64,000 bases of DNA from Heterodontus francisci. Taxonomy: Eukaryota. Location of the stretch: positions 7,294,304 through 7,358,303 of the forward strand of contig NC_090418.1 of NCBI RefSeq assembly GCF_036365525.1, written 5' to 3'. Under the pieces are notes generated by a model that was given only the letters and a program-made list of their open reading frames with translations, was not told the DNA's origin and searched no databases. Position numbers and translations under genes: made by a program. Positions 19,989 to 64,000 of this stretch are shown piece after piece; the first letter of the stretch is position 1; each line of letters starts with the position of its first letter.

Positions 19989-20085
19989 CTGGGAGCACCG
20001 TAAGCTCCACTGCCGTAGCTATCTATCCCTCTCACATTGTTGGTTGGATTGCCAGCGCACAGTTTCCCCCAGCTCCCAGCCGTAA
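19989..20085 (-). CDS. LECT2: LECT2 exon 2 (VTAGSWGKLCAGNPTNNVRGIDSYGSGAYGAPR)
   Basis: 97 nt, acceptor tctcacacAG, donor GTAATC, phases 1 and 2. Aligns to the LECT2 mature N-terminus. Confidence 0.9.
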
Positions 20086-21553: not shown

Positions 21554-21559
21554 TTAAAG

Positions 21560-28719: not shown

Positions 28720-29440
28720 CCCACTCTCCCCCTCAGTCCCCATACCCTTTAATATCCCACCCAATCTAAACTCCCCCTCACTCCCCACGCCCTTTGATAT
28801 CCCACCCGGTCTAATCCCACTCTCCCTCTCACTCCCCACGCCCTTTAATGTCTAATCTCACTCTCCCTCTCACTCCCTGTACCCTGCGATATCTCGCCCA
28901 GTCTAATACCACTCTCCAACTCACTCCCCACGCCCTTTAATGTCTAATCTCACTCTCCCTCTCACTCCCTGTACCCTGCGATATCTCGCCCAGTCTAATA
29001 CCACTCTCCAACTCACTCCCCACACCCTTTAATGTCTAATCCCACTCTCCCTCTCACTCCCCACGCCCTTTAATGTCTAATCTCACTCTCCCTCTCACTC
29101 CCTGTACCCTGCGATATTTCGCCCAGTCTAATACCACTCTCCAACTCACTCCCCACACCCTTTAATGTCTAATACCACTCTCCCTCTCACTCCCTGCACG
29201 CTTTGATATCCCACTCAGTCTATTCCCACATTCAGCCTCACCCCCCCACACTCTTTAATATCCCACCCAGTCCACTCCCATTCTCCCTCTCACTCCTCGC
29301 ACCCTTCAATATCCCAACCAGTCTAATCCCACTCTCCCTCTCACACCCCACGCCCTTTAATATCCCACACAGTCTAATCCCACTCTCCCTCTCACCCCCG
29401 CCCGCCCCCCCCCCCCGCACCCTTTAATATCCCACCCAGT
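28720..29440 (+). repeat. Minisatellite (TCTAATCCCACTCTCCCTCTCACTCCCCACGCCCTTTAATATCCCAC-like, about 39-49 bp units)
   Basis: About 15 imperfect units read directly. Confidence 0.9.
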
Positions 29441-29696
29441 CTGAGTTGTGGGAAAATAAGCAAACGTCTCGCACTAATGGTCCCCATCGCTTTAAGAATC
29501 GGAACAGCAGGGATCATCAGTGTGAGTTTCTCCAGGGCACATTGAGGCACACCGCAACGTCCCAGTTTTGGCGGTAAGTTGGTTGTCGGAGGTTGCGTTC
29601 GCTGTTGTTGGGACCACAAGAGCCGGGCCTTAGAAATTGTACCAACAAAAGTAATTTAATGATTCCCTTTCCTGTGTTAAATTCTGTCTCACACAA

Positions 29697-31710: not shown

Positions 31711-33953
31711 GTGAGAGAGGGTTCGATTCCCAGCAGCTTCTTGTTAACCCACATCTCCCCGCAAAGCTTCAGCCACTTCAGCAATGCAGGAATAGTCAGA
31801 GATTTAAAATTTACAGCTTCCGAGGGGGTATAGGGAGCAGTAGTACAGGTACGATGGACAGAATGGCCTCCTTCCTGGCTACCTCATGCTGTGATTTAAA
31901 CAGGAATCATTGCCCTGTATTGAGCTACTGGGCTTGTTCACTTGTGGGTGATGATCTCCGACTATGGATGTCGAGCTGAAATCGATGAAAATATATCTGT
32001 AAAGTGATATTTTACAATGCAACTAGGAGCTGATGCAAGTCATAGAGAGATACAGCACTGAAACAGGTGGCGTGTGCGGAGGCTGCCAGCTTGATGGAGG
32101 CAGCCTCTTTGTGGCAGGCTGGGATGGGGAGTGGGGAGGGGACAATCGGAGCATCAAAGGACCCCCTCAGAGCCCCAACGATCCACGCGGAGGATGACTT
32201 CCTGAAGCCCTGGGAAAACCCAGCCCTTGATCTGCAGCACTGTCCCACACCCAGCATGGCCCATGGCACCGACACCTTGGCAACACCCAAACAGGATAGA
32301 AGGAAACGCTTGTCATCAGAGAGGCCCCATGCTCACCACCAGCTTCCGAATCTCTTCATCACATCCTTGTCTCTCCACATTATGGAGAACAATTGCTCCG
32401 TTCAATGTCTTCATTTTCTCTAAGACTGCAAACGCACTGTTAAACTCACTCTGCTCACCCCGCGCGGGATCCAAGACCCATCTCTCATTCTAAGCCATTC
32501 TTTCCTGGGGCCAGTGTGAGACTCTTCACCTCCCTCAGTATCTCCTCCCTCCTGCAGTCCTCAGGCTTTCAAAACACAAGTTTGCGTGTCAACCAATTCC
32601 CGCTTCCTGCTCGATCCCCTCCTTCTCCTTCTCTCCACGTCCTGATTGACAGGTCGTTTCGAGCTCATTGCCCCCCGGGTCTCCAACAAGGATCAGACGC
32701 TCGGTTAATAATAAACATCACCGTGAGAGCAGCTCATGACTCCGACCCCCCCAGTCACTGCGCCAGTCAAAGCTCATGTGCTCATTTGCCCTTCTCCCCC
32801 CTCCTCATCCCCTTGTTACCCCTTCGAGTGCTCACCTGCCGGACCCTGACTCAAGGCAGGTCGCGACCCCGTGGCCTGAGATCCTCAGCTCGTGTGCCAG
32901 TTTGCCTGGGGATGGATGTCAGAGGAGGGTCATCACAGGAGAAAGTGAGGGGGAAGGAAACCCAAGTGTGGGGTGAAAGGTCAATCACACATGAGACCTC
33001 GGGATGGAGCATTAATTTGCAGGGTTGGGATGCAGCATTGGGATGGAAGGTTCGGATGTCGGATTAGGATGTAGTGTTGGGATTTTGCATTAGGATGGAG
33101 TGTTGGGATGGGCCATTGGGATCTCGGGTTGGGATGGAATGTCGACATGGAGGGTTGGGATGTAGAGTTCAGATGGAGCATTGGGATGGAATGTTGGGAT
33201 GGTGCTTTGAGATGGAAGGTTTGGATGGAGAGTTGGGGTGTAGGATTCGGATCTGGTGCTGGGATGCATCATTGGGATGGAGCACTGGGATGGAGAGTTG
33301 GGATGAACTGTTGGGATGATGGATTGGGATGGAGTGTTGGGATGATGGGTTGGGATGGAGTGTTGGGATGATGGGTTGGAATTTGGGGCTGAAGGAGGTC
33401 TCGGAGGTGCACTAGGTTGAAGGGAATGGAATACCGAGGAGATGGGAATTCGGATATGAAGTTCTCGCACTGGGAACAGTTTCCCAATGGATTCAGCAAA
33501 GAACTCGATGGTGAGATTGTGCGGGATAGGAGAGTCCTGGATGAGCATTAACGGTGAAATACAAGAACAAGTCTTAGTTGTCATCTGGTACTGAAGGGTC
33601 TTAGCGATTACACAATCTACCCTGGAGACAGAGAGGGAAGTGAGTGAGTGTGAAAGTTGAATCTTGCAGTGTGGCGACAGGGCTGAGAGAGACTGAGTCA
33701 GAATAAAACTTCCCCAAAATCCGATGACCTCCACACGCCTGGTAAAACTAATTCCTGTCTTGTCGAGATGGGATTACAAAAGACACTTGTCCAGCTTGCT
33801 TTCTGATGGGCTATGAGTTGAGATCTCCCTGCACAGGGCTCGGCTGCAGTCTGCTCTCATGAAGGTGATACGTTAATGGCTATCTAACGTGAGATATCCA
33901 AAGTTGCGAAGCTTCTTCAAGTCGAAGGTTATTCAACAGCGAGTGGTACAGAT

Positions 33954-34011
33954 ATGGACTTGAAGCTCCCCAGTGTCCTCCTGATCAGCATCTGGCTGTT
34001 TTTAATTCAAG
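33954..34011 (+). CDS. Duplicated leader exon MDLKLPSVLLISIWLFLIQ(G), with no V exon of its own
   Basis: Intact ATG and G|GTACGT donor, phase 1, one amino-acid difference from 12196-12253. Whether it is used is unknown. Confidence 0.5.
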
Positions 34012-34075: not shown

Positions 34076-34219
34076 NNNNNNNNNNNNNNNNNNNNNNNNN
34101 NNNNNNNNNNNNNNNNNNNNNNNNNNNNNNNNNNNNNNNNNNNNNNNNNNNNNNNNNNNNNNNNNNNNNNNNNNNNNNNNNNNNNNNNNNNNNNNNNNNN
34201 NNNNNNNNNNNNNNNNNNN
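34076..34219. other. Assembly gap (N run)
   Basis: N bases. Confidence 1.
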
Positions 34220-45230: not shown

Positions 45231-45330
45231 CAGATGTGTGATGAGTATTTTAAGGAAGTAAATGTGGTTTACAACTGCCACTGCAGGAGCAGTTATATTG
45301 TGGTCAGATGTGGACAGGGAAACATAAAGA
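45231..45330 (+). promoter_or_regulatory. Candidate proximal promoter of the three-V receptor
   Basis: ETS AGGAAGT 45253-45259, RUNX TGTGGTT 45263-45269 and TGTGGTC 45299-45305, E-boxes CAGATG at 45231 and 45305. All lie within 145 nt of the ATG. Confidence 0.5.
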
Positions 45331-45371
45331 ATTCTCACCCAAGTAAAGGCAACATAAATCAGCCTTTGTCC

Positions 45372-45435
45372 ATGATGCTGAAAGCCCTCAATCCTCTCTG
45401 TACCTGGACATGCTGCATTACTCTACTTGCTACAG
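45372..45435 (+). CDS. Leader exon of the three-V inhibitory receptor, MMLKALNPLCTWTCCITLLAT
   Basis: 64 nt, strong donor CAG|GTAAGG, phase 1. In frame with all three V exons. Confidence 0.8.
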
Positions 45436-47020
45436 GTAAGGTGGGTTCGGCCGTGATCCCTACTGCTATTTAAAATTCTCCATTTGCACCGTCTAGAGAG
45501 CCAGCCTGTGAACAGCGGTGATTCAAGATTCAGGAGATTAACTCAGGAGAGTTTAGAAACCTTCCTGGTGATCAGAATAGTCTATAGGGATGTGGGTCTC
45601 AAAGGGGCACAGTGATCGTCAGAAACTGGTGGGGAGTGAGCACAGAGAAGGGAGCAAGAGAAAGAGATAGGGGAAGAGAATGAGAGGGAAGGAGAGAGGG
45701 AACGCAGAGAAAGAGAGAGGAAGGAGGAAAGGGAAAGAAGGGAGACAGTGAAAGAGAGTAGAGAACAAAAGAGAAAGACAGTGAAAGAGAGAAGAGACAG
45801 CCAACGACAGAGAAGAGAGAGAGAAACAGACCAATTGGGAACAAGACAGAAAGAGGAAAGTGAGAGAGAGAGACACACACACAAATGAAAGAGCAAGTTC
45901 CCTCAATGACAGCACAGAGAACAGTTTGTTATCTTTAGGGCTGTCACTGAGTTGCTTTGTAGAATAGAACAGAGCTTCCATTTGGATGGTAAAGGTTTCT
46001 TCGGAGAAGGGCTGGGTAGCAATCTATGGAAGGAATGCACTTGGCCTGACGTACAGTCTGGGCTGAGTGTTTCCAACTCTTGAATAGGTTCTTGTTAACA
46101 CTTAATAATTACAGGGCAAGGAGCAAGCCACTTCTGTGGTAGTGTTCCTGTCTGTGCATCGGAAGGCAACAAGTTTGAGCCCTAGTCCAGACAATACTGG
46201 AAGATGAAGACTAGAATAGAGTCCCTGAAACTCAATGGGTGCGGATCTACTGATTGGTTGCCTTGTGACATTTTCCATCATATGTCATAGAATCTGTATA
46301 AAGACACAATGTTGCTGCTACTGTGTTTCATATGCCCTGCATTTTTGCTTCTGTATATAATTGAAGTGTAAATAAATTTAATTAGTTTTACTTAACCTGT
46401 ATGGTTATGCTATTCCTCATCATTGAACAACAAAATTTTGTATTTATGAAGCATCTCTAACAGAATAAAACATCCCAAGGCGCTTCACAGGAGCGTTATG
46501 AAACAAGATATGACATCAAGCTACATAAGGAGATATTAGGTCAAATAGTCAAAAGCTTGGTCAAAGAGGTAGGTTTTAAGGACTGTCTGAAGAAGGCACA
46601 GGCACCAATGGTGGAGCAATTAAAATCCCAGCGAGGAGGAGAGGGTGGTTCACTGGATTGTGCTCAGAGACTAATAATCTGGCTCATTTTACTCGTTGAA
46701 GGATTAAGAACTCTGAGCATAATTGTCATCTCAGTGCCCCTCCCACTCTCCCCAGTGCCTGCCCTCTCTGCCCTCCTGCATTTCCTGAGATTGGGTTACT
46801 CGGTACCAAACGGCCCTAATCTGGAAGCCTCTGGTTTGCATGTCTCAGTATCACACAAGGTTATTGGTTCTCCTCTGGTATTTGATTAGTCAGTGGTGGT
46901 AATATCTCCCAGAGCCGTTAACAGTTCTTAACTCCAGATCAGTGTTCACTCATGTTAGTTAAGTCAGTTCCACATTCTTTGACCTGGCACTTTAATGAGT
47001 CTTGTGTCCCTTTTATCCAG

Positions 47021-47389
47021 CATTGGGAGGGATGAAAAGCAAGGTCTCCCAGTCCCCGTCCTCTCTCTGGGTAACAGAAGGCGAGGCCGTCAATCTGATC
47101 TGCACCTTACAGACAGCAATCACAGACACGAAGGAACTCAGCTTCTGCTGGACCTGGGATCGTACTGAGGTCATCTGTCCTGCAGAAGTCAATTTTTCTG
47201 AATCATCGCCGTGTGATAGTCCTGATCCAAGAGTCTTCATCATCGCTCATTTAGCAAATAAATCCTCCGTCCTAACCATCACCCGAACATATCTAAACTA
47301 TAGTGGCATCTACAGGTGTCAGGTCACGATTTTGAATCCCATCCCGATTGAGACATTTCATAGCAATGGCTCTGTTGTGTTGGTACAAG
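47021..47389 (+). CDS. V-set Ig exon V1 (CD28/CTLA4/PD-1-family-like)
   Basis: 369 nt, phase 1-1, acceptor cccttttatccAG, donor GTGGGT. VSQSPSSL...LIC...WTW...VIC...SPC...SGIYRC QVTILNPIPIETFHSNGS gives canonical Cys plus a second Cys pair. Confidence 0.92.
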
Positions 47390-47939
47390 GTGGGTACTGT
47401 TTAAGTTATATCTCCATTCTTTATCTTGCTTTTCAAAATAAAATGTCACTTTTTATTCAGTACTAAACTGTATCTGCCACATATCTGCCCATTTTCCCCA
47501 TGTCTGTTCATGTCCTCTGGTTGTTTCTTCCTGATAGTTTGCAAGTTGTGTTTAAGGCCCAACTACTGCCTGGCTTCAGGTGGTGGGAGGGGTCTGGGAG
47601 GGGGGAGGTTGGTGGTTAGGGGAGGGAGATGGTTTAGGGAGCTGTCCCATCCACTCCCAGCTACCTGCACCACTTCAGACAGAAGAGAAGGAGAAGGTTC
47701 CCTCATTGGCAAGATAGAGTACAGTTTTATATAGTATTCACAGCAGAGAAACAGGCCATTCGGCCCAGCAGGTCCATGCTGGTGTTTATGCTCAACACCA
47801 ACATCTTGCCACCCGTCTCCATCTTAGTCCATCAGCATTTCCTTCTTTTTCTTTCTCCCTCATGTGTTTATCCAGCTTCTCCTTAAATGTATTTACACTA
47901 TTCACCTCAACCACTCCTTGTGGTAGCCAAAGTCAGTGG

Positions 47940-48660
47940 TGATCCCGTCTCCATCTGACCTGGGAAACCGGACCGCATTTTACAGTCCCCAGGCCTTTCA
48001 TTGGTCTGATGCGGGACTTCCATCTCATTGAGGAAGGATGTCCCACCAAATGGAGCTGCCGGCCAATCAGCGGCCGGCAGCTCTTAATCCCAGCAATTCC
48101 ACCGGGAATGGTGGCCACTGCTGGGACAGCAACCCAGCATCAACAAGAAAAGGAAGGTCGCCATGGGAAAAGGTGAGCTTTTGGGGCCTCGTCGGGGATA
48201 ATCGGTTGGGCCCTGGGGAGGCAAGGGTGGTTGATTGGGGAAACGGGGGGCATGTTGGGTGCTGAGGGTGGTTGGGGCATTAGGAGAGGCCCTCTGTCAT
48301 GCACAGGGTGCCTGACTAGGTGCCCCCCCCCACCACCACACCACCCCCAGGCCGTCAGAAAGCTGCCTGCTTTTGTCAGGCGGCTTTTCTCAGGCCTGGC
48401 CACCCAACCGGCCAAGGGTAAAATCTGCAATGTGGCGGGCGGAGACCCTTAAGTGGCTGTTAACCGGCCACTTAAGAGCCGTGATTGGCCTTGGGCAGCA
48501 GGCCATTTTGTGCTGCTGCAGCCCCGCAGAAATTGCGGTGGAGGCGGGAGCGGATTGGGAAGGGCCTTCTGAGCCTCCTATTCCATTTTACGCACGCCCT
48601 CCCCCCCATCCCCCCGCCACCAAACCGCTCTTTGGGGAGGGCGGAATTTCCGGCCATAAT
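47940..48660. mobile_element. GC-rich non-autonomous DNA-transposon-like (MITE) remnant
   Basis: Resembles 14060-14465 (CCTTAAGT...GGCGGGAA.ATTC.GCC end). Class is uncertain. Confidence 0.3.
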
Positions 48661-48940
48661 CTTAAAGACCTCGATCAAGCTCACCCTCAGCCTTCTCGTT
48701 TCCAGAGGAACCAGCCTCGGCCTATTCAATATTTCCTGATAGGTGTAACCCAGAGTCCGCTGGAAGCTGGGTTTATATTCTGTGGGACCCCACCATAGTG
48801 ACTCTTCCCTTCTCCGTGGCTCCGGAATTTTTTGTGCGGGATTGAATTGCCTTCTTCAAAATTGTTTGAATGTTTGTTCATTCTGAAATGCTGGCTACCC
48901 CCAGTAACCATTCCCTGAGTCTTGTGTCCCTTTTATCCAG

Positions 48941-49306
48941 CGCCCGGACAGATGGTAAGCAACGTCTCCCAGTCCCCCTCCTCTCTCTCGGTAGCAGAAG
49001 GAGAAGCCGTCACTCTGAACTGCACCTTACGGACAGCAGCCATAGACCCAGAAGTGCTCAACTTCACCTGGACCTGGGAGAGGACTGAGGCGTCCTGCCA
49101 TGTAGAGGCCAGTGTTTCTGAATCGCTGCAGTGTCATGCCCCTGATCCGAGAGTCTCCATCACAGCTCATTTACCAACGAAATCTTCAGTCTTAAGGATC
49201 AGCCAATCAGCTCTGAAGGACAGTGGTACCTATCAGTGTCACGTTATGATCCTCAAACCTCTGCTCGGGAAATTTCATGGCAATGTCTCTGTGGTGCTGG
49301 TACAGG
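48941..49306 (+). CDS. V-set Ig exon V2
   Basis: 366 nt, phase 1-1, same acceptor as V1, donor GTAGGT. LNC...WTW...SC...QC...DSGTYQC, open frame. Confidence 0.92.
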
Positions 49307-49764
49307 GTAGGTACCCCGTCAGGTATATCTTCATTCTTTATTGTCTTTCTAAAAATGTATTGGCACATTTTTCTGCATTAAACTGTAGCTGCCACTTATC
49401 TGCCCATTTCTTGCATGCCTTTTTAATATCCTCTTCCTGATTGTTTGCAAGTTAGATTTTCGATCCAGCTACTGCCCGATTTCAGGTTGCAATGTGGTTG
49501 TGAGGTTGGGGGTGTCAGGGTGTCAGGTTGAGGGAGGGCACTTAGAGGAGGAAGATGGTTTAGAACGCTATCCCACCCACTCTCAGCCAACTGCCCCACT
49601 TCTAGATGAAGAGAAAGAGAAAGTGCAGTCCGTGAAAGTTGGATATATGTCGGGCTATCACTGAGTCTCTTGGTTGATTTTGGGAAAGGCTGGAGAGTAA
49701 CCAGTAGAGGAATGGGTTTGACTTGACTGAAGGCCTATTCAGATTGCTGCCAACTCTCTGTTTT

Positions 49765-50428
49765 ATTCTTTCATAGGATGTGGGCGTCGCTGGTAAGACC
49801 AGCATTTGTTGCCCATTCCTAATTGCCCTTGAGAAGGTGGTGGCAAGCTGCATTCTTGAATGGCTGCAGTTCGTATGGTGTAGGTACTCCCACAGTGCTG
49901 TTCAGGAGGGAATTCCAGGAGTTTCACCCAGCAACAGGGAAGGAACGGTGATATAGTTCCAAGTCAGGATGGTGTGTGACTTGGAGGGGAACATGAAGGT
50001 GGTGGTGTTCCCATGCATCTGCTGCCCTTGTCCTTCTAGTTGGTAGAGGTCGCAGGTTTGGAAGGTGCTGTCGAAGGAGCCTTGATGTGTTGCTGCAGTG
50101 CATCTTGTAGATGTTACACACTGCTGCCACTGTGCGTCGGTGGTGGAGGGAGTGAATGTTTGTGGATCGGGTGCCAATCAAGCGGGCTGCTTTGTCCTGG
50201 ACGGTGTCGAGCTTCTTGAGTGTTGTTGGAGCTGCACCCATCCAGGCAAGTGGAGAGTATTCCATCACATTCCTGACTTGTGCCTTGTAGATGGTGGACA
50301 GGCTTTGGGGAGTCAGGAGGTGAGTTACTCGCCGCAGGATTCCCAGCCTCTGACCTGCTCTTGTAGCCACAGTATTTATATGGCTGGTCCAGTTCAGTTT
50401 CTGGTCAATGGTAACCCCCAGGATGTTG
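49765..50428 (-). mobile_element. CR1-superfamily LINE 3' fragment between V2 and V3
   Basis: 148-aa ORF nearly identical to the ORF at 20940. Confidence 0.9.
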
Positions 50429-50766
50429 AACTCTTGAACTGGTGGTTGTTATTGCTCAATTCATTGCTGGACAGGGAGTGAGCCTTCAGTCCAGTGGTGG
50501 GTGTGGACCCAATGGTGTCCCCACAACCCCCACCATCCTCCTAAAGTGTAGTTGGTGCTCTTTAGCATTGTTTGCAGCCCCTCTGAATATAAACCTGTGA
50601 GGAGGCAGTGGAATCCCAACATAGTGACTCTTCCCTTCGCTGTGACTCAGGAAGCTTACGTTTGAGACTGATTTTCCCTCTTCATTGTTGTTTGAATGTT
50701 TGTTCATTCTGAAGTGGTGGCTACCCCCAGTAACCATTCCCTGAGTCTTGTGTCCCTTTTATCCAG

Positions 50767-51132
50767 CGCCCGGACGGATGGTAAGCAACGTCTCCCAGTC
50801 CCCCTCATCTCTCGCGGTAGCGGAAGGAGAAGTCATCACTCTGAACTGCACCTTATGGACAGCAGCCATGGTCCCAAAACAGCTCAACTTCACCTGGACC
50901 TGGGAGAGGACTGAGGTGTCCTGCCATGTAGAGGCCAATGTTTCTGAATCGTCACAGTGCGATAGTCCTGATTCAAGAGTCTCCATCACAGCTCACTTAG
51001 CAACTAAATCATCAGTCTTAAAGATCAATCAATCAGCTCTGAAGGACAGTGATACCTATAGGTGTCAGGTTAAGATCCTCAAACCTCTCTCCAGAGCACT
51101 TCATGGAAATGGTTCTGTTCTGCTTGTACAGG
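50767..51132 (+). CDS. V-set Ig exon V3
   Basis: 366 nt, phase 1-1, donor GTAGGT. DSDTYRC QVKILKPLSRALHGNGS. 28 of 122 residues differ from V2 by manual count. Confidence 0.92.
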
Positions 51133-51529
51133 GTAGGTACAGTTTAAAGTATATTTCCATTCACTATCTTTCTTACCAAATACAAAATTTTTCTGCATTA
51201 AACTGCATTTGCCACTGATCTGCCCATTTGCACCTTGCCTGTTTAAATCCTCTTGTCATCTCCTTCATTCTCTCTGACAATTTGCACGCTGTAATTTCCG
51301 CCCAATTGCTACCCGATGTCAGGTGGTGAGGGTGGGAGGGGGCATGGGGGATGGTTGAGGGAGGGATAAGAGTTCGGCTGCTGTCCCACCCACTCCCCGA
51401 CATCTGCATCATGTAGGATTGCCAGCTGGACGTGACAGTAAACAGCGAACATGTTGCCCACATTTATGTCTCTACCAATGCCTCATCTTCCATCTCCTCT
51501 AATTTTCTCCTCCAATCACTGACGCAGTT

Positions 51530-51990
51530 TAGCCAGGGTGGTTCAGTTGGTAACATTCTTGTTTCTGAGTCACAAGGTTCTGGATTCAGGTCCAATGCTA
51601 GAACTTAAACACAAAAATCAAGACTGACACTGCAGTGCATTACTGCATTGTCAGTGTTGCTGTATTTTGGATGAGATGTTAAACTGAGGCCCCGTCTGCC
51701 CTCTCAGGTGGACATAAAAGATCCCATGGCTACTTTTTCGAAGAAGAGTAGGGGAGTTCTCCCCGGTGTCCTGGGGCCAATATTTACCCCTCAATCAACA
51801 TCACCGAAACAGATTACCTGTTCATTATCACATTGCAGTTTGTGGGAGCTTGCTGTGTGCAAATTAGCTACCGGGTTTCCTACATTGCAACGGTGATGAC
51901 TCTTCAAAAATATTTCATTGGCTGTAAAGCTCTTTGAGATGTCCGGTGTTCATGAAAGGCACTATATAAATGCAAGTCTTTCTTTCTCTA
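51530..51990 (+). mobile_element. Near full-length Deu-type SINE
   Basis: tRNA-like head GTGGTTCAGTTGGT...GGATTCAGGTCC, core, and TATAAATGCAAGTCTTTC tail. Confidence 0.7.
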
Positions 51991-53916
51991 GTTTCTGGTA
52001 GGCTATGGAGATTCCACCTTCTACACCCCTCCCTTCACACTTCCAAGTTGACTGTCCCCAATCAGTTCATGTCCTTCTCGGATTCATTCATTTTATTTGC
52101 AATGAAGATCTCGAGTAATTTCCCTGTTGCTGACGTTATGTGGACCAGTCGATAACTGCCTGGTTAATTCCTTTCCTCCGAGCTTCAGAAAAGTGTAATA
52201 TTTGTCACTCTGCAGTCCACAAATACCAGTCTCATCTTGGAAGACTTCAATCCGATGGACTCTTCCTACAAACCTCTTTGATACTCTGGGGCACAATCCA
52301 TCTGAGATTCACAAGGAAGGTAGCAATACTGACTGGGCACAACTATCAGGAAGGACTGGAAAGGATGGGACTCTTTTCTCTAAAGTAGAGAACTTTCTCC
52401 TGAACTTTCTCCACTGGGTTTTATTAGTGACTGTCTTATATTAATGGCCTCTGGTTTTGGTCTCCCACACAAGTTGTTTGTATTTGTTCATAGGATGTGG
52501 GTGTCACTGGCTAGGCCAGCATTTATTGAAGGTGGTGGTGCGATGCATTCTTAAACCACTGCAGTCCCTGGGGTGGAAGTACACCCACAGTACTGGCGGT
52601 TCGATACGACTGAATCTCTTGCTAGGCCATTTCAGAGTCACATGTAGGTCAGACCAGGTAAGGACAGCAGATTTCCTTCCCTAAAGGACATTAGTGAACC
52701 AGATGGGTTTTTACAACAATCGACAATGGTTTCATGGTCACCACCAGACTCGCTTTTTAATTCCAGATTTATCAATTGAATTCAAATTTCACAATTTGTC
52801 ATGGTGAGATTCGAACCCATGAGCATTAGAGCATTAGTCTGGGCGCTGGATTACTAGTCCAGTGACGTTGCCACTACGTCACCACCTCCCCCACGTCTTC
52901 TCTACATCGGCACTACCAAAGCCCATTGTGAGCTTAAAAAAAAAGCTTGTCTTTAAAAGTGGTCCGTATGGGCAGGGTTGAGTTGTAAGACTGCAGAAGC
53001 ATGGATGTTGGAACTTAGAAATGTGGTGCCTGAGAGCTGGTCTTCGAGAGTTAGGCAAGGCAACAAACAACAGGGAAAAGAAAACTCTCAAACGTGTCTT
53101 CCAACTGAACTCCAACGTTTAGGCAAGGGGGTCGAAGTAGAAATAGGTGAGTCTGGGGCTGATGTCTCCCGAGCTTTGGTTCATTGTTGGAAGGGAGTGT
53201 GGGTAGGGAAATGAGTGTAAAACCCTCAGAGTAAATGAAGAGGCAGTTGGAATCAGTCTCAGGGACTGTGTGATTCTTTAGATCGAGGGGTTAATGGGCC
53301 TTGACCTCCCATCTTGGTCAACGTTTAGTTGGCTGGCTCCATGCAGAATCATAGAATGGTTCCAGCACAGAAAGGAGACCGTTCAGCCCGTCATCTCTGT
53401 GCCTGCTCTCTGCCGGTAGACTGCTGGTAGGAGCCCGCGAATTGGCCTCAGTGCCTCTAAAGGCGAGGGAAAGGAAGCAGACTTAACACTTGACCCCACT
53501 TGCGGTTGCTTATCTGGATTTGACCTGAGTGCTTTAGCTGCGACCCGGACAAGGTCAGGAGAGGAAGGGGCAAAACATCAAGGCGGAAGGGAAAGAAAGG
53601 GGACAGCGTTGACTGCCTGAAGATCGAACAGGCTCCATAGAAAACAAACCACACTGACCTCCCACCTCACCTCACCTCCCCCCACCCAGTCCCTTCTATT
53701 AGCAGGGAGCAAAATAAGTCAGGAGGAGAAATGGGAGAGTGTAACGAACCCAGACTAACCCTAACCCTAACGCAGCCCTGTCTCCTGATCCGCCTGTACC
53801 GCCTTCCCATTCCCAGGATCCATGAATAAAGCAACCCCTCTCTGCCTGGAGCTGACTGGGCTCCCAATACCACATGTTCATTTCACAAAGTACGGATAAT
53901 GGAACTTCTCTTTCAG

Positions 53917-54033
53917 GGACAATCTTCTCACCACTTCCTGTCTTGTACCAGACAATAGCTGGAGTTTCTGTCATCCTGTTAATCTCCGCAGCGGCGTGTT
54001 TGATCCATTTCTTCATCAAGAGACATAAAAAGG
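53917..54033 (+). CDS. Transmembrane exon GTIFSPLPVLYQTIAGVSVILLISAAACLIHFFIKRHKK
   Basis: 117 nt, acceptor ttctctttcAG, donor G|GTAAAT, phase 1-1. Hydrophobic span with no Arg, Lys, Asp or Glu, then a basic stop-transfer KRHKK. Confidence 0.88.
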
Positions 54034-54193
54034 GTAAATCGACACTCACTTTACTTACATTGCTGAGAATATTTTGCATTTTTTTAAAATATATCTTTTT
54101 GCAGTGAATTCTGTGCTCGTTAAAGGTGATGGATAGAGATGGTGGAACTGAATCTCATTCTCGATTCAACCACCCAGAGTCTGTCAGTTCAGT

Positions 54194-54300
54194 TACAGCA
54201 CGGGGTTAGATACAGAGTAAAGCTCCCTCTACACTGTCCCCATCAAACACTCCCAGGACAGGTACAGCACGGGGGTTAGATACAGAGTAAAGCTCCCTCT
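54194..54300 (+). repeat. About 1.5 units of the 68-70 bp minisatellite
   Basis: Same unit as 10485-11352. Confidence 0.85.
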
Positions 54301-54653
54301 CACACACTTCCAGGAACGGAAATTGCAGAGTGGGAGAGTCTATGATAGATTAACGTGTACATGGGGTATGGAAGGAGAGTAAGTGAGTGGGTAGAGCCCA
54401 TGCTATGGCAGGATGGGCATGGGCTGTCGATCGGAGATAAAATGCGTGGGTTGTGCCCATGACAAGATAGGGGTACAGTGGAAGGAATGCGATTGGTGGG
54501 CCCATTTCCTCTTGCCACACGTTTATGGCCCGTGCGATACCCAACTCAGAGACCCTTCAGATGTAGTAATAACCCAGAGATCTATAATCCATGAGCTGTT
54601 CACAAGCTCTGATTCCTCAGGGCAGCCCATGGCAGACAGATTTCTTTGCTCAT

Positions 54654-54763
54654 TGTGGTTGGTTGCTCACTTCCTGGTTACTGAGAGCTGGAAGCTCAGT
54701 TTCACTTCCTGTTCCGTTTTTCCTGCACTGCTCGGTCTCCAGATGTGTCCATCATTCCAGGAA
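54654..54763. promoter_or_regulatory. Candidate intronic immune enhancer
   Basis: RUNX 54654-54660, ETS ACTTCCTG 54669-54676, ETS-IRF composite AGGAAGTGAAACTG (minus, 54697-54710), E-box CAGATG about 54740, STAT site TTCCAGGAA 54755-54763. Confidence 0.5.
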
Positions 54764-54969
54764 TTTGGGCTTTAAAATAGCGACAAGAAGATGACAGAGC
54801 TGAAATGCTTTCAGCTGCCTGGACTCTAAGCTTCAGAAATCCCCCCCATCAACCTCTCTGCCTCTCTCTCTGCCTCCTTTAATTCACTCCTTAAAACTGA
54901 TGTCTTTGACCCAGCTCTTTGATCACCTGTCCTACTGTCACCGCAGTGTCAAATTTTGTCTGACTCATC

Positions 54970-55385
54970 TCACAGAAAAAATGTTGGAAACACTCAGCAG
55001 GCCTGGCAGCATTGGTGGAGAGAGAAACGGAGTTAACATTTCAGGTCGATGGCCTTTCATCAGAACTGGTAAAAAGTTCTAGATGTGACAGGTTTTAAGC
55101 AAGTACAGTGGGGCGGGGGCGGGGGGGGAATGCCGAGAGGGGAGGAAAGAATAAAAGGGAAGGTCTGTGATGGTGTGGCAGGTAGGAGAGATTAGATAAC
55201 AAATGGGCTGATAGTGCGAGACAAAAGGAGATGTAATGGGACAAGTTAATAAGCAAAAGATGGGTCTAGCGGAGGTGTAAATGGCAACAGCAGAATCATT
55301 AGCAACAGATGCTGTCCAAAGAAAATGGGACCAGTGGTTACGATCTGAAAGTGTTCAACTCAATGTTGAGGCCGGGAGGCTGTAT
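54970..55385 (-). mobile_element. Penelope-like pLTR fragment with a hammerhead-like core
   Basis: Homologous to 43100-43670. Minus strand reads CTGATGA-AAGGCCATCGACCT-GAAA. Confidence 0.6.
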
Positions 55386-55991
55386 TAATGCTCCTGTGAA
55401 GCACCAAGGGATGGTTGGCTTCCTTAAAGGTGCTAAATAAATTCAACTGTTCACATTGGAAGGTCGTGGGTTCAACTCCCCCTCCAGAGACTTGAGCACA
55501 AAAAAATCTCGGCCGACATACCCAGTGCAGTACCGAGGGAGTGCTGCACTGTCGGAGGTATTTTTCACACGAGGCATTAAATCGTGACATCGTCTGCCGC
55601 CTCAGGTGCACTATTTTGAGGCAGAGCACGGGTGTTTTCCTGGTGTCCTGGGTCGAGTTCTATCCCTTAATCACTAAAACAGATGATCAGGTCATTATCA
55701 CATTGTGGGAGCTTGCTGTGCACAATTTTACTGCTGTGCTTCCTATGTTACAACAGTGACTGCACTTCAAAAAGTACTTCATTGGTACTTTATGAATGCA
55801 AATCTTTCTTTTTTGACTTATCTATAATTAAATGCAGCTATCGTACAAACAGATCGACAATGGGAAATACCCACTCTGCCTCACTCTCAGACAGCAGACA
55901 GCACCTCCGACAGTGCAGCACTCCCTCAGTGCTGCACCAGAAGTGTCAGCCTAGATTTTTGCATTTAAAGTTCTGGAGTAGGACTCTGAAC

Positions 55992-57744
55992 TGTTACGAC
56001 CGAGGTGGGAGGAGTGCACTGTCTTTCTGTAGTTCCACTTCCCCACAGGTCACAACATATACTTAAATGTTGTCATGCTAGGCCCCCACCTGCCAAGAAT
56101 GAGGCACATTAATTTTGTCATGAACATTGATTTTAAACTGTTACTGGAGTGAAGAAAGGACTTGTTAAACAGATCAGCCATGGCTGGTAAAGCTATTTGC
56201 AGATTAACAGATAGTGTTTGGAAGGACAAAGGACCATTCCTTGACACATTCAACCCACAATGGACTTTTGATCACCAGACATTGAAGGTGGGGGAGCTCA
56301 CATTCCAGGTTGACTGCTAAGATGGCCGAATACATGAACAGACATGGTCAAACCGGCTAGTCACATCATTAACCTCTGGGCAACTTCAGATTTTTGAATT
56401 TGAACAAACAGTTTGGGCAGAAAATCTGAGAAGATCTCTCTCCTGTCTGCTCCCATCTCTTTCTCACAAGCCTCTGAGTCCACTGAAGACACATGAACCC
56501 CAAGACAGAAAAGTCTCCTACAGTGAACAAGGTTTAAGAAGAATACTGGGCCCCAATGAAAAGCAAGATCTATCTACAATCAAGGACTCTACAGTGAGCT
56601 CGAAGAACCGTAACAACAAACTCCTCAGATATTGTCTCAAACTTTTCCACTTTATTTCTTCTGCTCTGTTCTGTCTCTATCTGCACGTGTGTATCACGTA
56701 TGCATGCTACCGTGAGCGCACCGTATATCCGTAGGCGTCAACGAATTAGAGTTTTACGCTTAGTTTAATAAAGTTCTACTTTTCTTCTTTACACCTAAGA
56801 AAGCCTGTTTGTGCTGGTGTCTTTGCCTTATAATTGGAAAGCGGTGAACAAGGATTCACCAAGGGGGGGCTAAAAACACAGTGTGTTTAAAAATTCAACC
56901 CTGTTACGGTAAGGCTGAAAGGGAACCCTAGACCTCGTTCTCACCTGGTCATAACAATGTGTACCCAGTTACTGCTGTGGCCAATTATATATTCTATCTA
57001 TTTTAATTTCAGAATAAAATCAACCCACCAGGTTTCTTTAATAAACAACAAAAGTACTAATTTATTTTAAAATAAGATTTAGTCAATAAAGATGAAAAGC
57101 TTCGAAATATGACAGGAAATATATATATTCCCTTCTAAATACCCAACACACACAAACACACGCACCAGTTAAAGGAAGAATAGAGATGCTTTGGCCAATG
57201 TACTTGCTAATTCTTGAAGAAAAAGGGTAAGATATGTTATGTTCCAGATGGCGTATAGTCTGGCATCCGAGTACATGTAGACAGGTCACTGGGATCTTTT
57301 CAGAAGCAGTTCATTCAGGAGTTGTCAAGAGGAAGTCTTCCAAAAGCTTCTCTCAGGAGAAATGGGGCATCAGGTGTTTATAGCTATCACACACTGGGCT
57401 TTTTTTGTGCAGGGTTTCTCAGAGAGGTGGAGAAAAGATGAGCTGGGTGATTCTTTCAGCAGGCTACAAACCCAATTGACTCAAAACAGTGTTCAAAAAT
57501 GAAACCCACTCCTGAGCACCATAAACCTTGACATGTCACTTCGCTTGTAAACAGCCAGAAGGCACCTGTTGTTTATTTAGCTGAAGACATGTGACATCCA
57601 GTAAATGTTGTTGTTAAGCTGAGTCCTGCCAGTGACCCTTTACAAAAAAGTCCAGCATCTATGACATCACTTCAGTCCTCCAATGAATCCATCTCCACAA
57701 TTTTAAAACACGAGTCCTCAAAAAATGGAAGCACTTTCATAACA
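55992..57744. mobile_element. LTR-like composite: solo LTR 55992-56956 (TGTTACGACC...GGTCATAACA) plus a second segment ending TTCATAACA, inserted in a SINE
   Basis: TG..CA ends with short inverted termini. GAAC repeated at 55988-55991 and 57745-57748, after which the interrupted SINE resumes. Confidence 0.7.
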
Positions 57745-59147
57745 GAACCTGTGACCGTCTGTCACAGAGGCATGCGTGTTATCCACTGAGTTACAGACAA
57801 CACAAGGGGGACTGTCAGAGAGAGGAGGGGGAGAGACAGAGACAAAGAGAGAGTAAAATGAGACACAACATCATCTTCATTTTGTGATTTTCCAAAATGA
57901 AACGGCGACGAGAGGGCAGCTGTTTGCTTTTTGCATCTCACGCACCATACCCTGTTTGTATAAGTTCGGCTGGAATCTCTCACCGAGAAATGGGAGGTGG
58001 CAACCTGACAAACATTTTGATTTCATTCTCTTTCTCTCCAGTCGTTCTGGCTCTTTCGTTTGCCCCAGTGCCAACCCACGCGGGCGCCTCTCACATGCCA
58101 AGCCTTCAGTGTTGACTTTCAGGCCGGCTATTCGACCGTGTGAGCCTGATCCCGTTCTTGCTTTGTGTATGCTGTGAAGGTCCAGGTTGGCTGCTTTTCC
58201 CCCACACCCACCCCCTTCCCCCACCCCATTCCCTGGTGAGAGCATTCCAACTTCTGCGAAACTCGCTGAGACACGAAAGCCCGCTTTGGCACATTGAAAG
58301 GGAACTCAGTGCTTGGCAACGGTTCGGAAGACGGCAGCATCAGAAACGGGAGCATAAGGGCTGCCTTGGTCCTACCCATGCCGGAACAAACTGCTGCCCT
58401 TCGTGTGTTATGTGCCGCACAGGTTACGCAGCATCAGGTGGCGAGGTAGTGGGCCAAAGTGTGCCAACGTTCACCCCATCTGTCGGGTGATAGGGACACG
58501 GAGTCTGGGACTGCCAGACTGGCAGACGCTGGTTGCATTGACAGAGCCAGCATGTTGCGGTCGGAGTCAGTTAGAAATGAGAAATTGTAATTAAATGGAC
58601 TCAGCTCTGAAACAGAGACCGAGAGGATGAAAATGAACAGCAACCAGAGAGAGAGGGAGGAGAGATTCCAGCAGATGCCAGTTAATGTACTGAACGATTG
58701 TGAAAGGTTCTGGGTTCCAGCCCCACGCCGGAGACCCGAGTAGAGACTCTAAGCCAAAACTCCAGCGCAGTACCGACGGAGCACTGCACTGCCGGAGGCC
58801 CCGTCTTTCAGATGAGACGTTAAACCAAGGTCCCCGTCTGCTGTCTCAGGTGCGCGCGAAAGATCCCGCGGGTCGCTGTTTTGAACAAGAGCGGGGGAGG
58901 GGTGGGAGGGTGGTGGGTGGAGTTCTCCCCAGTGTCGTGGGGCCAACATTTATCCCTCAACTGACATCACTAAAAATGAAAGGATCTGGGCGTCACCACG
59001 TTGCTGTATGTGGGATCTTGCTGTGCGCAGCTTGGTTTCCTGAACCGACAGCAGTTGACGACCTTTCCGTAAAGTGCGGTCTTGTGTTTCTCCAGCATTG
59101 CGTGTGTTTAAATACTCCAGGCTTACTGCTGTAATCTCACTCCTCAG

Positions 59148-59215
59148 GCCATGCTCGGAGTAAGGCACCTCAACAAGCCGGAGGGAACCCGAGGGACAGT
59201 GAAACTGACGCTCAG
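59148..59215 (+). CDS. Short cytoplasmic exon GHARSKAPQQAGGNPRDSETDAQ
   Basis: 68 nt, acceptor ctcctcAG, donor CAG|GTGCGT. Phase 1 to 0 exactly bridges the TM exon and the last exon. Confidence 0.75.
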
Positions 59216-59294
59216 GTGCGTGTATCCCAGTCTCTGAAGCAGCCACCAAGGCCCAGTCAATAGGCCTGTGGGGCACTGAGCTCCTCAGAGCAGC

Positions 59295-59660
59295 AAGGGG
59301 ATGAGGGACTTCAGTTAATGTGGAGAGACTGGAGAAGCTGGGATTGTTCTCCTTAGAGCAGAGCAGGTTAAGGGGAGATTTAGTCGAGGCGTTCAAAATT
59401 ATGAAGGGTTTTGATAGAGTAAATAAGGTGAAACTGTCTCCACTGGCAGGAGGGTTGGTAACCACAGGGCACAGATTTAAGATAATTGGCAAAAAAAAAC
59501 AGGAGGGGAGATGCGGAGAACCTTTTTTTAACGCAGCGAGTTATTGTGATCTGGAACGCGCTGCCTGAAAAGGCAGTGGAAGCAGATTCAATCGTAACTT
59601 TCAAAAGGGAAATTGGAGAAATACTTGAAGGGGAAAAATTTGCAGGGCGTTGGGGAAAAA
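59295..59660 (+). mobile_element. CR1 LINE 3' fragment
   Basis: ERLEKLGLFSLEQSRLRGDLVEAFKIMKGFD. Confidence 0.88.
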
Positions 59661-59667
59661 GCTAACT

Positions 59668-60555
59668 CGTGTCTCTCAGTCCCCCTCTCTCAGGGTGATA
59701 TCTGTACACTGACTGGTGTCTCAAAGTCCCTCTCTCTCAGGGTGATATCGGTACACTGACTGGTGTCTCTCAGTCCCTCTCTCTCAGGGTGATATCTGTA
59801 CACTGACTGGTGTCTCTCAGTCCCTCTCTCTCAGGGTGATATCTGTACACTGACTGGTGTCTCTCAGTCCCTCTCTCTCAGGGTGATATCGGTACATTGA
59901 CTGGTGTCTCTCAGTCCCTCTCTCTCAGGGTGATATCTGTACACTGACTGGTGTCTCTCAGTCCCTCTCTCTCAGGGTGATATCTGTACACTGACTGGTG
60001 TCTCTCAGTCCCTCTCTCTCAGGGTAATATCTGTACACTGACTGGTGTCTCAAAGTCCCTCTCTCTCAGGGTGATATCTGTACACTGACTGGTGTCTCTC
60101 AGTCCCTCTCTCTCAGGGTGATATCTGTACACTGACTGGTGTCTCTCAGTCCCTCTCTCTCAGGGTGATATCTGTACACTGACTGGTGTCTCTCAGTCCC
60201 TCTCTCTCAGGGTAATATCTGTACACTGACTGGTGTCTCAAAGTCCCTCTCTCTCAGGGTGATATCTGTACACTGACTGGTGTCTCTCAGTCCCTCTCTC
60301 TCAGGGTGATATCTGTACACTGACTGGAGTCTCACAGTCCCTCTCTCTCAGGGTAATATCTGTACACTAATTGGTGTCTCAAAGTCCCTCTCTCTCAGGG
60401 TGATATCTGTACACTGACTGGTGTCTCACAGTCCCTCCCTCTCAGGGTGATATCTGTACACTGACTGGTGTCTCAAAGTCCCTCTCTCTCAGGGTGATAT
60501 CGGTACACTGACCGGAGTCTCTCAGTCCCTCTCTCTCAGGGAGATATCTGTACAC
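59668..60555 (+). repeat. 47-bp minisatellite (GTCTCTCAGTCCCTCTCTCTCAGGGTGATATCTGTACACTGACTGGT), about 19 copies
   Basis: Period 47 measured between 59761 and 59808. Highly homogeneous. Confidence 0.97.
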
Positions 60556-60623
60556 ATTAACTTTCTGCTTTTTCTATGCACAGAAGGCTTATTTACCTCC
60601 AATGTCTTTTCTCCCTGGTTCAG

Positions 60624-60782
60624 CGCTCAGCAGAGGTGTTGTATGCAGTGCTGCAGACTCCTGCTTCAGTTCTTCAGGCCCAGCAGAGTGAGGAAACAGC
60701 GTACGCAGAAATCAGACTCTTCGAGCCAGGTCGTCCCCCTGGGGACGGGGTCAGGTCAGTCTACACTGTCGTGCATCAATGA
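60624..60782 (+). CDS. Terminal exon with ITIM (VLYAVL), ITSM (TAYAEI) and ITIM-like (SVYTVV) motifs
   Basis: Acceptor ttttctccctggttcAG, phase 0, 52 aa then TGA. Confidence 0.88.
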   Translation, partial: RSAEVLYAVLQTPASVLQAQQSEETAYAEIRLFEPGRPPGDGVRSVYTVVHQ

Positions 60783-61359: not shown

Positions 61360-64000
61360 CATCACACTAACCATCACCGACCGTTACACTGACCATCACT
61401 GACCATCACACTGGCCATCACTGACTATTACTGACCATCACACTGACCATCACTGACCATCACACTGGCCATCACTGACAATGACTGACCATCACACTGA
61501 CCATCACTGACCATCACACTGGCCATCACTGACTATTACTGACCATCACACTGACCATCACTGACCATCACACTGGCCATCACTGACAATGACTGACCAT
61601 CACACTGACCATGACTGACCATCACACTGGCCATCACTGACTATTACTGACCATCACACTGACCATCACTGACCATCACACTGGCCATCACTGACAATGA
61701 CTGACCATCACACTGACCATGACTGACCATCACACTGGCCATCACTGACTATTACTGACCATCACACTGGCCATCACTGACCATCACCCTGACCATCACA
61801 CTGACCATCACTGACCATCACCCTGACCATCACACTGACCATCACCCTGACCATCACACTGACCATCACTGACCATCACACTGACCATGACTGACCATCA
61901 CACTGGCCATCACTGACTATTACTAACCATCACACTGGCCATCACTGACCATCACCCTGACCATCACACTGACCATCACCCTGACCATCACACTGACCAT
62001 CACTGACAATCACACTGGCAATCACACTGACCATCGCACTGTCCATCGCACAGATCATCATACTGACCATCACACTGACCAACACCCTGACTGTCACACT
62101 GACCATCACTGACCATTACACTGACCATCGCTGACCATCACACTGCCCATCACCCTGACCGTCACCCTGACTATCACACTGACCATCACTGACCATCGCC
62201 CTGACCGTCACTGACGATCACACTGACGATCACACTGACCGTCACATTGACCATCACACTGACCGTCACACTGACCATCACACTGACCGTCACATTGACC
62301 ATCACACTGACCGTCACACTGACCATCACACTGACCATCACTGACGATCACACTGACCGTAACTCTGACCATCACATTGACCATCACACTGACTGTCACA
62401 CTGTCCGTCACATTGACCATCACACTGACCATCACCCTGACCGTCACCCTGACCATCACTGACGATCATCCTGACCATCACATTGACCATCACACTGACT
62501 GTCACACTGACCGTCACATTGACCATCACACTGACCATCACCCTGACCATCACTGACGATCATCATGACCATCACACTGACCGTCACATTGACCATCACA
62601 CTGACCATCACCCTGATCATCACTGACGATCATCCTGACCATCACACTGACCGTAACTCTGACCATCACATTGACCATCACACTGACTGTCACACTGGCC
62701 GTTACATTGACCATCACACTGACCATCACCCTGACCGTCACCCTGACCATCACACTGACCATCACTGACCATCGCCCTGACCGTCACTGACGATCACACT
62801 GACGATCACACTGACCGTCACATTGACCATCACACTGACCATCACCCTGATCATCACTGACGATCATCCTGACCATCACACTGACCGTAACTCTGACCAT
62901 CACATTGACCATCACACTGACTGTCACACTGGCCGTTACATTGACCATCACACTGACCATCACCCTGACCGTCACCCTGACCATCACACTGACCATCACT
63001 GACCATCGCCCTGACCGTCACTGACGATCACACTGACGATCACACTGACCGTCACATTGACCATCACACTGACCATCACACTGACCATCACACTGACCAT
63101 CACTGACAATCACACTGACCGTCACACTGACCATCACACTGACCATCACTGACCATCACACTGACCGTCACACTGACCATCACTGACAATCACACTGACC
63201 ATCACACTGACCGTCACACTGACCATCACTGACAATCACACTGACCATCACACTGACCATCACACTGACCATCATCCTGACCATCACACTGACAATCACA
63301 CTGACCTTCACACTGACCATCACTGACAATCACACTGACCGTCACACTGACCATCACACTGACCATCACACTGACCGTCACACTGACCATCACTGACCAT
63401 CTCCCTGACTGTCACCCTGACCATCACACTGACCATCACACTGACCATCACTGACTATCTCCCTGACTGTCACCCTGACCATCACACTGACCATCACCTT
63501 GACCATCACACTGACCATCACACTGACCGTCACACTGACCATCACTGACAATCACACTGACCGTCACACTGACCATCACACTGACCATCACTGACAATCA
63601 CATTGACCATCACACTGACCATCACACTGACCATCACCCTGACCGTCAGACTGACCATCACACTGACCGTCACACTGACCATCACTGACAATCACACTGA
63701 CCATCACACTGACCATCACTGACAATCACATTGACCATCACACTGACCATCACCCTGACCATCACCCTGACCATCACACTGACCTCCACCCTGACCATCA
63801 CCTTGACCATCACACTGACCATCACTGACCATCTCCCTGACTGTCACCCTGACCATCACACTGACCATCATCCTGACCATCACACTGACCGTCACACTGA
63901 CCATCACACTGACCATCACTGACAATCACACTGACCGTCACACTGATCATCACTGACAATCACACTGACCGTCACACTGACCATCACCCTGACCGTCACA
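61360..64000 (+). repeat. Satellite of mixed 10- and 12-mers (CTGACCATCA / CTGACCATCACA), running off the right edge
   Basis: Continuous array, with a higher-order repeat around 62550-63020. Confidence 0.98.

Follow-up and report, generated by a model that had tools for sequence, protein, structure and literature searches.

A horn shark gene for a putative inhibitory receptor with three tandem CD28-like V domains in its main transcript

Members of the CD28 family of checkpoint receptors are described as carrying one V domain each in all jawed vertebrates (Quiniou et al., 2024; PMC11599192). A gene of the horn shark Heterodontus francisci, located at positions 45,372–60,782 of a 64,000-nucleotide (nt) stretch of contig NC_090418.1 (in the following the window, to which all positions refer), contains three V exons between one leader exon (L) and one set of transmembrane (TM) and cytoplasmic (Cyt1, Cyt2) exons. 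This raises the question whether the three V domains are joined in one receptor or exchanged for each other by splicing, two readings that a preliminary description of the window had put forward side by side. The description had also listed the seven exons (Table 1) with positions, phases and a total of 502 amino acids (aa), all of which was borne out by the sequence and by a script that checked the exon borders: the coding parts sum up to 1509 nt or 502 aa, AG acceptors and GT donors are present at the exon borders, and the intron phases 1,1,1,1,1,0 are mutually compatible. The V1, V2 and V3 exons translate without stops, all three are of phase 1-1, and the identity of their acceptors, which had likewise been described, extends over 25 nt. 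Blastn and tblastn searches found no further copies of leader, TM or tail exons in the window, in agreement with the claim that no leader or TM exon lies between the V exons. Besides the canonical cysteine pair, each V domain contains a further pair formed by positions 52 and 64 (C'-D region), V1 has one extra unpaired cysteine, and the AlphaFold2 model of V1 has a confident V-set fold with a predicted local distance difference test score (pLDDT) of 93.5.

RNA evidence came from assembled contigs of four runs (X1–X4) of one sample, which were placed on positions 45240–51235. Exons were covered by these contigs, introns had near-zero coverage outside repeats, and the joints were of the GT..AG type, indicating that the contigs behave as RNA. 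The joint from V1 to V2 (47389/48941) was present in all four runs with depths of 256, 132, 71 and 8, and so was the joint from V2 to V3 (49306/50767) with depths of 268, 141, 81 and 9. The leader was joined to V1 (45435/47021) in run X2 only, at a depth of 132. V1, V2 and V3 exon depths were similar across the contigs. Counting these junctions had been proposed in the preliminary description as the way to tell its two readings apart: the L-V1, V1-V2 and V2-V3 joints were found, whereas none of the V-skipping joints (L to V2, L to V3 or V1 to V3) was among the joints listed for the four runs of this one sample. The remaining listed joints fall in or between intronic repeats, and the contigs depart from the genome at the V3 donor (51132/51133) in all four runs, one of them continuing for 588 letters. 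The dominant transcript holds V1, V2 and V3 in tandem. In the intronic repeats at 49640–50440, 46440–46640 and 47640–48040, the contig depth reached up to approximately 3e5 with many internal joints; these repeats are expressed repeat families outside the mRNA of this gene.

The occurrence of V1-V2 and V2-V3 joints in all runs and the lack of a skipping joint among those listed therefore favor a three-domain receptor and leave the exchange of V domains unsupported. In full, our reading is that of one gene with the main mRNA leader-V1-V2-V3-TM-Cyt1-Cyt2, which would encode a 502-aa type I membrane protein with an inhibitory tail and non-rearranging, VJ-type V domains whose FG loop is similar to that of CD28 and CTLA-4. 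The third V domain would have originated from a duplication of the proximal V, and the gene would be part of an undescribed set of cartilaginous-fish receptors with amphibian relatives. We assign a probability of about 0.75 to this reading. The first reading of the preliminary description, a three-domain receptor on one leader, TM and inhibitory tail, is thus supported by the joints in 4/4 runs, by the similar exon depths and by two-V orthologues in other sharks, while its second reading did not gain support. Observations that weigh against our reading concern the transcripts, the first exon, the divergence of V2 and V3, and the kinship of the V domains, and are set out below with each of these subjects.

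As to the transcripts, the data stem from a single sample, contigs lose rare isoforms, the joints given fall 20 short of the full list, and the RNA nature of the contigs was inferred from coverage and joint type. A RefSeq isoform of the basking shark (X3, P0163) has the composition L-V1-TM-tail, from which the second V is missing. As P0163 skips the second V, minor exon skipping may take place, and this isoform is the only hint toward a cassette system in which splicing places one V exon or varying subsets of them on a fixed leader, TM and tail, thereby swapping ligand specificity. The phase 1-1 V exons with their identical acceptor would keep every combination in frame, and the differences between V2 and V3 are greatest in the loops, as such a system would have it. 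However, a cassette system is very improbable given that the V1-V2 and V2-V3 joints reach exon-level depth in every run, that L-V2, L-V3 and V1-V3 are not among the listed joints, that the single RefSeq model retrieved for the horn shark has all three V domains, and that two-V tandem proteins are usual in other sharks.

The first exon is the part of the gene for which transcripts and annotation diverge. The top database match to the V exons was the RefSeq protein XP_067879862.1 (P0001, 567 aa), annotated as 'prostaglandin F2 receptor negative regulator-like' and the sole horn shark RefSeq model returned. It contains the exact series V1-V2-V3-TM-Cyt1-Cyt2; the comparison with existing annotation that the preliminary description had suggested thus shows that RefSeq already holds these exons as one protein under a wrong name, and the designation 'PTGFRN-like' is misleading. 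The N-terminus of P0001 (first 86 residues) maps to the LECT2-like exons at 26212–26319 and 31563–31733, which RefSeq joins to V1, and in runs X1, X3 and X4 the 39–114 contig letters 5' of V1 fall off the leader at 45372, indicating that a second first exon is also in use and that the main first exon is uncertain. If the RefSeq model were correct, read-through from an upstream LECT2-like gene would fuse a LECT2-like N-terminus without signal peptide to V1–V3, as the mapping of P0001 residues 6–94 to the two LECT2-like exons and the deviating letters 5' of V1 would permit. We consider this improbable, because run X2 splices the leader at 45372 to V1, this leader has orthologues in four other sharks, the LECT2-like N-terminus gives no signal peptide, which a TM protein with Ig domains would then lack, and a rival first-exon candidate exists at 33954. 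The leader at 45372 is, judged by its residues, the orthologous leader, agreeing at 9–10 of 21 positions with the leaders found in the orthologues from basking shark, great white and sawshark, and the LECT2-like N-terminus of P0001 is probably wrong, being either chimeric or a read-through product. The phase-1 leader at 33954–34011 resembles the leader of the neighboring 'type B' receptor (P0055 in Table 1) and might be the first exon of the X1, X3 and X4 contigs, for which the LECT2-like exons are the other candidate. It points at V1, which follows 13 kb downstream, the interval containing no V exon that belongs to this leader, and lies within an inverted duplication.

Relatives of the receptor were collected by an exhaustive HMMER search with V2 and by two word-indexed searches. 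They were found only as 'uncharacterized' or misnamed proteins ('PTGFRN-like', 'IGSF3-like') in cartilaginous fish and in a few amphibians. Two-V orthologues with the same leader, the same TM segment and the same tail with an immunoreceptor tyrosine-based inhibitory motif (ITIM) and an immunoreceptor tyrosine-based switch motif (ITSM) are present in Cetorhinus (P0151), Carcharodon (P0162) and Mustelus (P0165). In Pristiophorus, the model (P0003) likewise starts with this leader and contains two V domains, the tail motif being absent from it, and a single V domain is present in the model from the whale shark (P0007). A comparison of V numbers between sharks, also proposed in the preliminary description, thus yields two V domains in four other sharks and one in the whale shark model. 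In phylogenetic trees, horn shark V2 and V3 fall inside the clade of shark second domains, with support values of 97/93 within the galeomorphs and 89/85 for the clade that also contains the sawshark. As V2 and V3 join the second-domain clade of the two-V orthologues, the two-V receptor appears to be old in sharks and the proximal domain to have been copied in the horn shark. The ancestral shark gene would accordingly have had one distal and one proximal V domain, and the horn shark would have gained the third by tandem copying of the proximal V exon with flanking intron. V3 is nearer to the second domain of other sharks than to V2 in the best tree, and a duplication restricted to the horn shark also fits the data (approximately unbiased (AU) test, p 0.39).

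Self-comparison of the window gave further insight into the origin of the V exons. V2 and V3 share a unit that extends beyond the exon by approximately 160 nt on the upstream side and 130 nt on the downstream side, with 84% identity overall. Homology of V1 to V2 and V3 begins exactly at the acceptor block 46996–47020, so that the 25-nt acceptor is the only homologous part upstream, extends for approximately 300 nt downstream and amounts to 72–73% identity. Outside the acceptor, the nucleotide identity of V1 to V2 and V3 is approximately 73–76%, and a 25/25 match of the acceptor by chance has a p of approximately 4e-4 to 1e-3. The repeated unit consists of an exon and little intron and therefore reflects exon duplications, not decayed whole genes. 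At the protein level, identity is 59% for V1/V2, 61% for V1/V3 and 77% for V2/V3, and the corresponding ratios of nonsynonymous to synonymous substitution rates (dN/dS) are 0.51, 0.41 and 0.59, with a dS of 0.22 for V2/V3. The short segments ahead of strand A (APGQMVS and similar), which the preliminary description had likened to signal-peptide ends, are instead conserved linkers between domains in the orthologues; the signal-peptide-like start of each V exon may thus be a duplication relic that now serves as inter-domain linker. That V2 and V3 might be an assembly artefact was ruled out, as the proteins are only 77% identical and both exons occur in one spliced contig chain.

The third V domain might also be a neutral, lineage-specific exon duplication that is included by default through its copied strong acceptor and adds length without new function. 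The identity between V2 and V3 is 87% in the exons and 76–86% in the flanking introns, and because the exon identity hardly exceeds that of the introns, constraint on both domains is weakly shown. Also the dN/dS of 0.59, the compatibility of the tree with a V2/V3 pair of the horn shark only and the two V domains in the other sharks sampled are consistent with neutrality. On the other hand, V2 and V3 both retained open frames and all four cysteines at a dS of 0.22, and V3 is nearer to the second domain of other sharks than to V2 in the best tree, a hint of an older duplication. In addition, the proximal V is likewise repeated in the sawfish Pristis (P0164), and the differences between V2 and V3 gather in the BC and FG loops: 28 of 121 residues differ, namely 11 of the 22 residues in these loops and 17 of the 99 elsewhere (p 0.004, for loop windows that were chosen after the data were seen). 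This clustering fits an added domain with its own surface and would be compatible with a neutral spacer as well. Taken together, a neutral third V domain seems rather unlikely to us; since the BC and FG loops are where V2 diverges most from V3, the two domains may supply binding surfaces in addition to mere length.

Relatives in rays and sawfish carry two to four V domains. Some of them (among P0004, P0006, P0164, P0166 and P0171) have a TM segment of type B, no ITIM, and an ectodomain in which type-A V domains are combined with a V of type B. Isoform models of Pristis pectinata LOC127586538 (P0164/P0166) combine the type-B V and TM with two or three type-A V domains, and one of these isoforms (P0164) duplicates the proximal V almost exactly, in parallel to V2 and V3 of the horn shark. 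A CD28HL1-like model from Danio rerio (XP_073791869.1, P0117) has two near-identical tandem V domains with the loop DIPVLEKKNGTG; multi-V forms may therefore occur elsewhere in the wider family.

The cytoplasmic tail of the horn shark receptor contains, according to a motif scan, the ITIM VLYAVL, the ITSM TAYAEI and a third tyrosine motif, SVYTVV. Four other galeomorph sharks, namely basking shark, great white, Mustelus and whale shark, share these conserved motifs. The translated TM segment has no charged residue and the stalk no cysteine. With [S/I/V/L]xYxx[I/V/L] and TxYxx[V/I] in the tail and an uncharged TM segment, the receptor would belong to the ITIM/ITSM class, as assigned from motifs. 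The sites in the SH2 domains of SHP-1 and SHP-2 for ITIM and ITSM are reported to be conserved over representative species in PMC12151841, a study that covers sharks to humans. By analogy to other ITIM/ITSM receptors, the ectodomain would bind a ligand, probably a B7-like protein, whereupon phosphorylation of the tail tyrosines would recruit SHP-1/SHP-2 and dampen leukocyte activation.

A resemblance of the receptor to the CD28 family was suggested by the preliminary description, and was confirmed at the level of motifs, which form the strongest link, but not in sequence and fold searches or with respect to the number of V domains. In V1, as well as in V1 and V2 of the basking shark, the FG region reads YxC-x6-P-x-P-x5-GNG, and the length of the FG loop and the positions of prolines and GNG are equal to those in CTLA-4 and shark CD28H (tables of PMC11599192). 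The proline-rich FG loop followed by (S/G)NG(S/T) that had been described for the gene therefore holds for V1 with its P-x-P and GNG, whereas V2 and V3 have a loop shortened by one residue and without the second proline (KPLLG and KPLSR), and V2 has GNV instead of GNG. The proline-bearing FG loop with GxG and the tyrosine motifs in the tail, both typical of the CD28 family, are thus present. In contrast, the single V domain that is common to the family (PMC11599192) is replaced by three V domains in the main mRNA and in P0001, and by two in other sharks. In an Atlas feature search, which provided a lead only, the nearest clusters were 'PD-1 family' (0.95) and CTLA-4 (0.93).

Profile searches against the PDB, Foldseek and VIA-align retrieved generic VJ-type V domains with TCR V-alpha first; CTLA-4 was the first non-rearranging match of Foldseek at rank 23, and CD28 reached a Z of 12.7 over 113 residues in VIA-align, level with many others. 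No named CD28-family protein was retrieved in the HMMER and word-indexed searches, including a profile search of a set of 5.8 billion proteins, which gave only uncharacterised chondrichthyan proteins and a few Siglec- or pIgR-like matches from fish. For 18 members of the receptor family, Pfam assigned nothing more specific than generic V-set, apart from one match to the ICOS V-set model with an E of 0.13. The receptor could thus be a generic inhibitory receptor of the immunoglobulin superfamily (IgSF) with VJ-type V domains, of the NITR, SIRP or Siglec-like kind, in which the CD28-like loop arose by convergence. Besides the results of Pfam and of the sequence searches, the position of TCR V-alpha, Siglec-15 and MPZ, which equal or outrank CD28 in the PDB profile and fold searches, and the three V domains in place of the family's single one (PMC11599192) are in line with this explanation. 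Against it stand the agreement in FG loop length and in proline and GNG positions with CTLA-4 and shark CD28H, the additional pair of cysteines in the C'-D region, the rank of CTLA-4 as first non-rearranging Foldseek match and the PD-1 and CTLA-4 clusters as nearest neighbors in the Atlas. We regard a generic IgSF receptor as the strongest of the competing explanations, yet as less likely than not. The V domains are, from their sequence features, CD28-like, and membership in the CD28 family is unproven.

Comparison with named receptors shows both shared and divergent features. PDCD1, the gene of PD-1, is composed of leader, V, TM, short cytoplasmic and last exon, as is the shark gene. PD-1 also has an inhibitory tail with ITIM and ITSM and belongs to the nearest Atlas cluster, but it has a single V domain, to which the shark receptor adds not only further V domains but also a third tyrosine motif and the second cysteine pair. 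The CDR3 loop of PD-1 contains no conserved prolines, and the gene is linked to muc4/tnk2/rtp in Chondrichthyes (PMC11599192). As the FG loop of the shark receptor is proline-rich, with P-x-P in V1, orthology with PD-1 is argued against, and the three V domains do not match PD-1 either. The FG spacing C-x6-P-P/L-P-x5-G-N-G is shared with CTLA-4, CD28 and three chondrichthyan CD28/CTLA4 homologues. In CTLA-4 and CD28, too, the C'-D region contains an additional pair of cysteines. In contrast to them, the shark receptor lacks a triple proline of the MYPPPY type, a YxxxxT motif in the TM segment, a cysteine in the stalk that would link a dimer by a disulfide bond, and YxNM or YVKM in the tail, and instead has three V domains and an ITIM/ITSM tail logic. 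Tandem V-sets, each encoded by one phase 1-1 exon, are known from IgSF receptors that expanded by exon duplication, such as pIgR, EWI/PTGFRN/IGSF3 and skate MDIR, and this likeness is mirrored in the automatic names 'PTGFRN-like' and 'IGSF3-like' given to the relatives. The shark receptor differs from pIgR, CD300 and EWI by its CD28-like V domains (VJ-type, GNG) and its ITIM/ITSM tail, and the protein is far shorter than EWI.

The non-rearranging V domain with YxC, proline-bearing FG loop and GxG is also found in CD28H/TMIGD2 and in CD28HL1-2. CD28HL3 shares all of these features and in addition has a tail in which an ITSM-like motif comes after an ITIM; it has one V domain and was not found in cartilaginous fish (PMC11599192). 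The loop of the shark receptor has the form YxCxVxIL(K/N)P(L/I)PI-x4-GNG, and its tail contains VLYAVL-x16-TAYAEI. Set against CD28HL3, this corresponds to YxCxxxxx[K/N]P versus YxCxxxxx[I/A/V/L]P in the loop and to VLYAVL-x16-TAYAEI versus [I/V]xYxxL-(x)n-VTYxxV in the tail, which is close in both cases and exact in neither. The shark gene thus differs by K or N instead of I, A, V or L before the proline, by a shorter spacing between ITIM and ITSM, and by its three V domains (two in other sharks). The loop sequences of the shark receptors were not found in the supplements of PMC11599192, and nothing relevant was found in later literature on CD28HL/CD28X. The receptor family is annotated yet undescribed, and its multi-V build is absent from the literature searched.

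If the kinship with the CD28 family is true, the early repertoire of this family was structurally more varied than reported, the rule of one V domain is broken, and an inhibitory member exists in cartilaginous fish, where CD28HL3 was thought to be missing. A broader scenario, which we put forward tentatively and hold to be doubtful as a whole, is that an undescribed branch of the CD28 superfamily persists in cartilaginous fish and, as remnants, in amphibians. Its members would have one to four tandem V domains, built by V exons being duplicated and shuffled between neighboring inhibitory and non-inhibitory paralogues, and regulated skipping of proximal V exons, as in isoform X3 of the basking shark, would tune reach or ligand choice. 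The shark receptor combines a CD28-like V type, a gene layout like that of PD-1, an ITIM/ITSM tail and three V domains in the main transcript. The analysis also corrects the misleading RefSeq name and the probably chimeric N-terminus of XP_067879862.1, and suggests V1 alone and V1–V3 as constructs for ligand searches against nearby B7-like genes.

Table 1. Exons of the horn shark receptor gene and related features of the window.
Feature	Position	Strand	Details
Leader exon (ATG, MMLKALNPLCTWTCCITLLAT)	45372–45435	+	64 nt; ends in phase 1; GT donor; joint to V1 45435/47021 in run X2
Acceptor block TGAGTCTTGTGTCCCTTTTATCCAG ahead of V1	46996–47020	+	25 nt; identical copies at 48916–48940 and 50742–50766
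V1 exon, membrane-distal V-set	47021–47389	+	369 nt; phase 1-1; Pfam V-set E 4.7e-9
V2 exon, putative copy of the ancestral second V	48941–49306	+	366 nt; phase 1-1; Pfam V-set E 3.9e-14; joints on both sides in 4 runs
V3 exon, putative copy of the ancestral second V, nearest to the second domain of other sharks	50767–51132	+	366 nt; phase 1-1; Pfam V-set E 3.5e-12
Stalk and TM exon	53917–54033	+	117 nt; from translation; identical in P0001
Cyt1, short cytoplasmic exon	59148–59215	+	68 nt; phase 1 to 0; equals P0001 residues 490–515
Cyt2, last coding exon	60624–60782	+	159 nt including stop; VLYAVL, TAYAEI, SVYTVV
Candidate alternative first exon, phase-1 'type B' leader MDLKLPSVLLISIWLFLIQ	33954–34011	+	shares 10 of 19 residues with the type-B leader of the basking shark
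LECT2-like exons	26212–26319, 31563–31733	+	
LECT2-like exon	18866–19036	-	
Fourth related V exon, 'type B' receptor (P0055), loop LEPLPIIQMKGNGT	5750–6097	-	approximately 29–33% identical to V1–V3

Apart from the gene itself, the only genes represented in the window are LECT2-like exons and a paralogous V receptor. The neighborhood of the gene contains a large inverted duplication (12200–22313 and 28015–34006; 76–97% identity in tblastx) that includes LECT2-like exons and the leader exon of a receptor. Both copies end beside an assembly gap (12013–12144 and 34076–34219), and the duplication may therefore be a real palindrome or an assembly problem. The type B receptor (P0055) has a TM segment but no ITIM, and orthologues of it were found in sharks, rays, chimaera and amphibians. 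Within the intron between Cyt1 and Cyt2, a minisatellite with a 47-nt unit spans positions 59665–60555 (19 copies, 94% matches). Directly 3' of the gene, an array of approximately 230 copies of the 12-nt unit CATCACACTGAC covers 2.6 kb (61360–64000) and reaches the end of the window.

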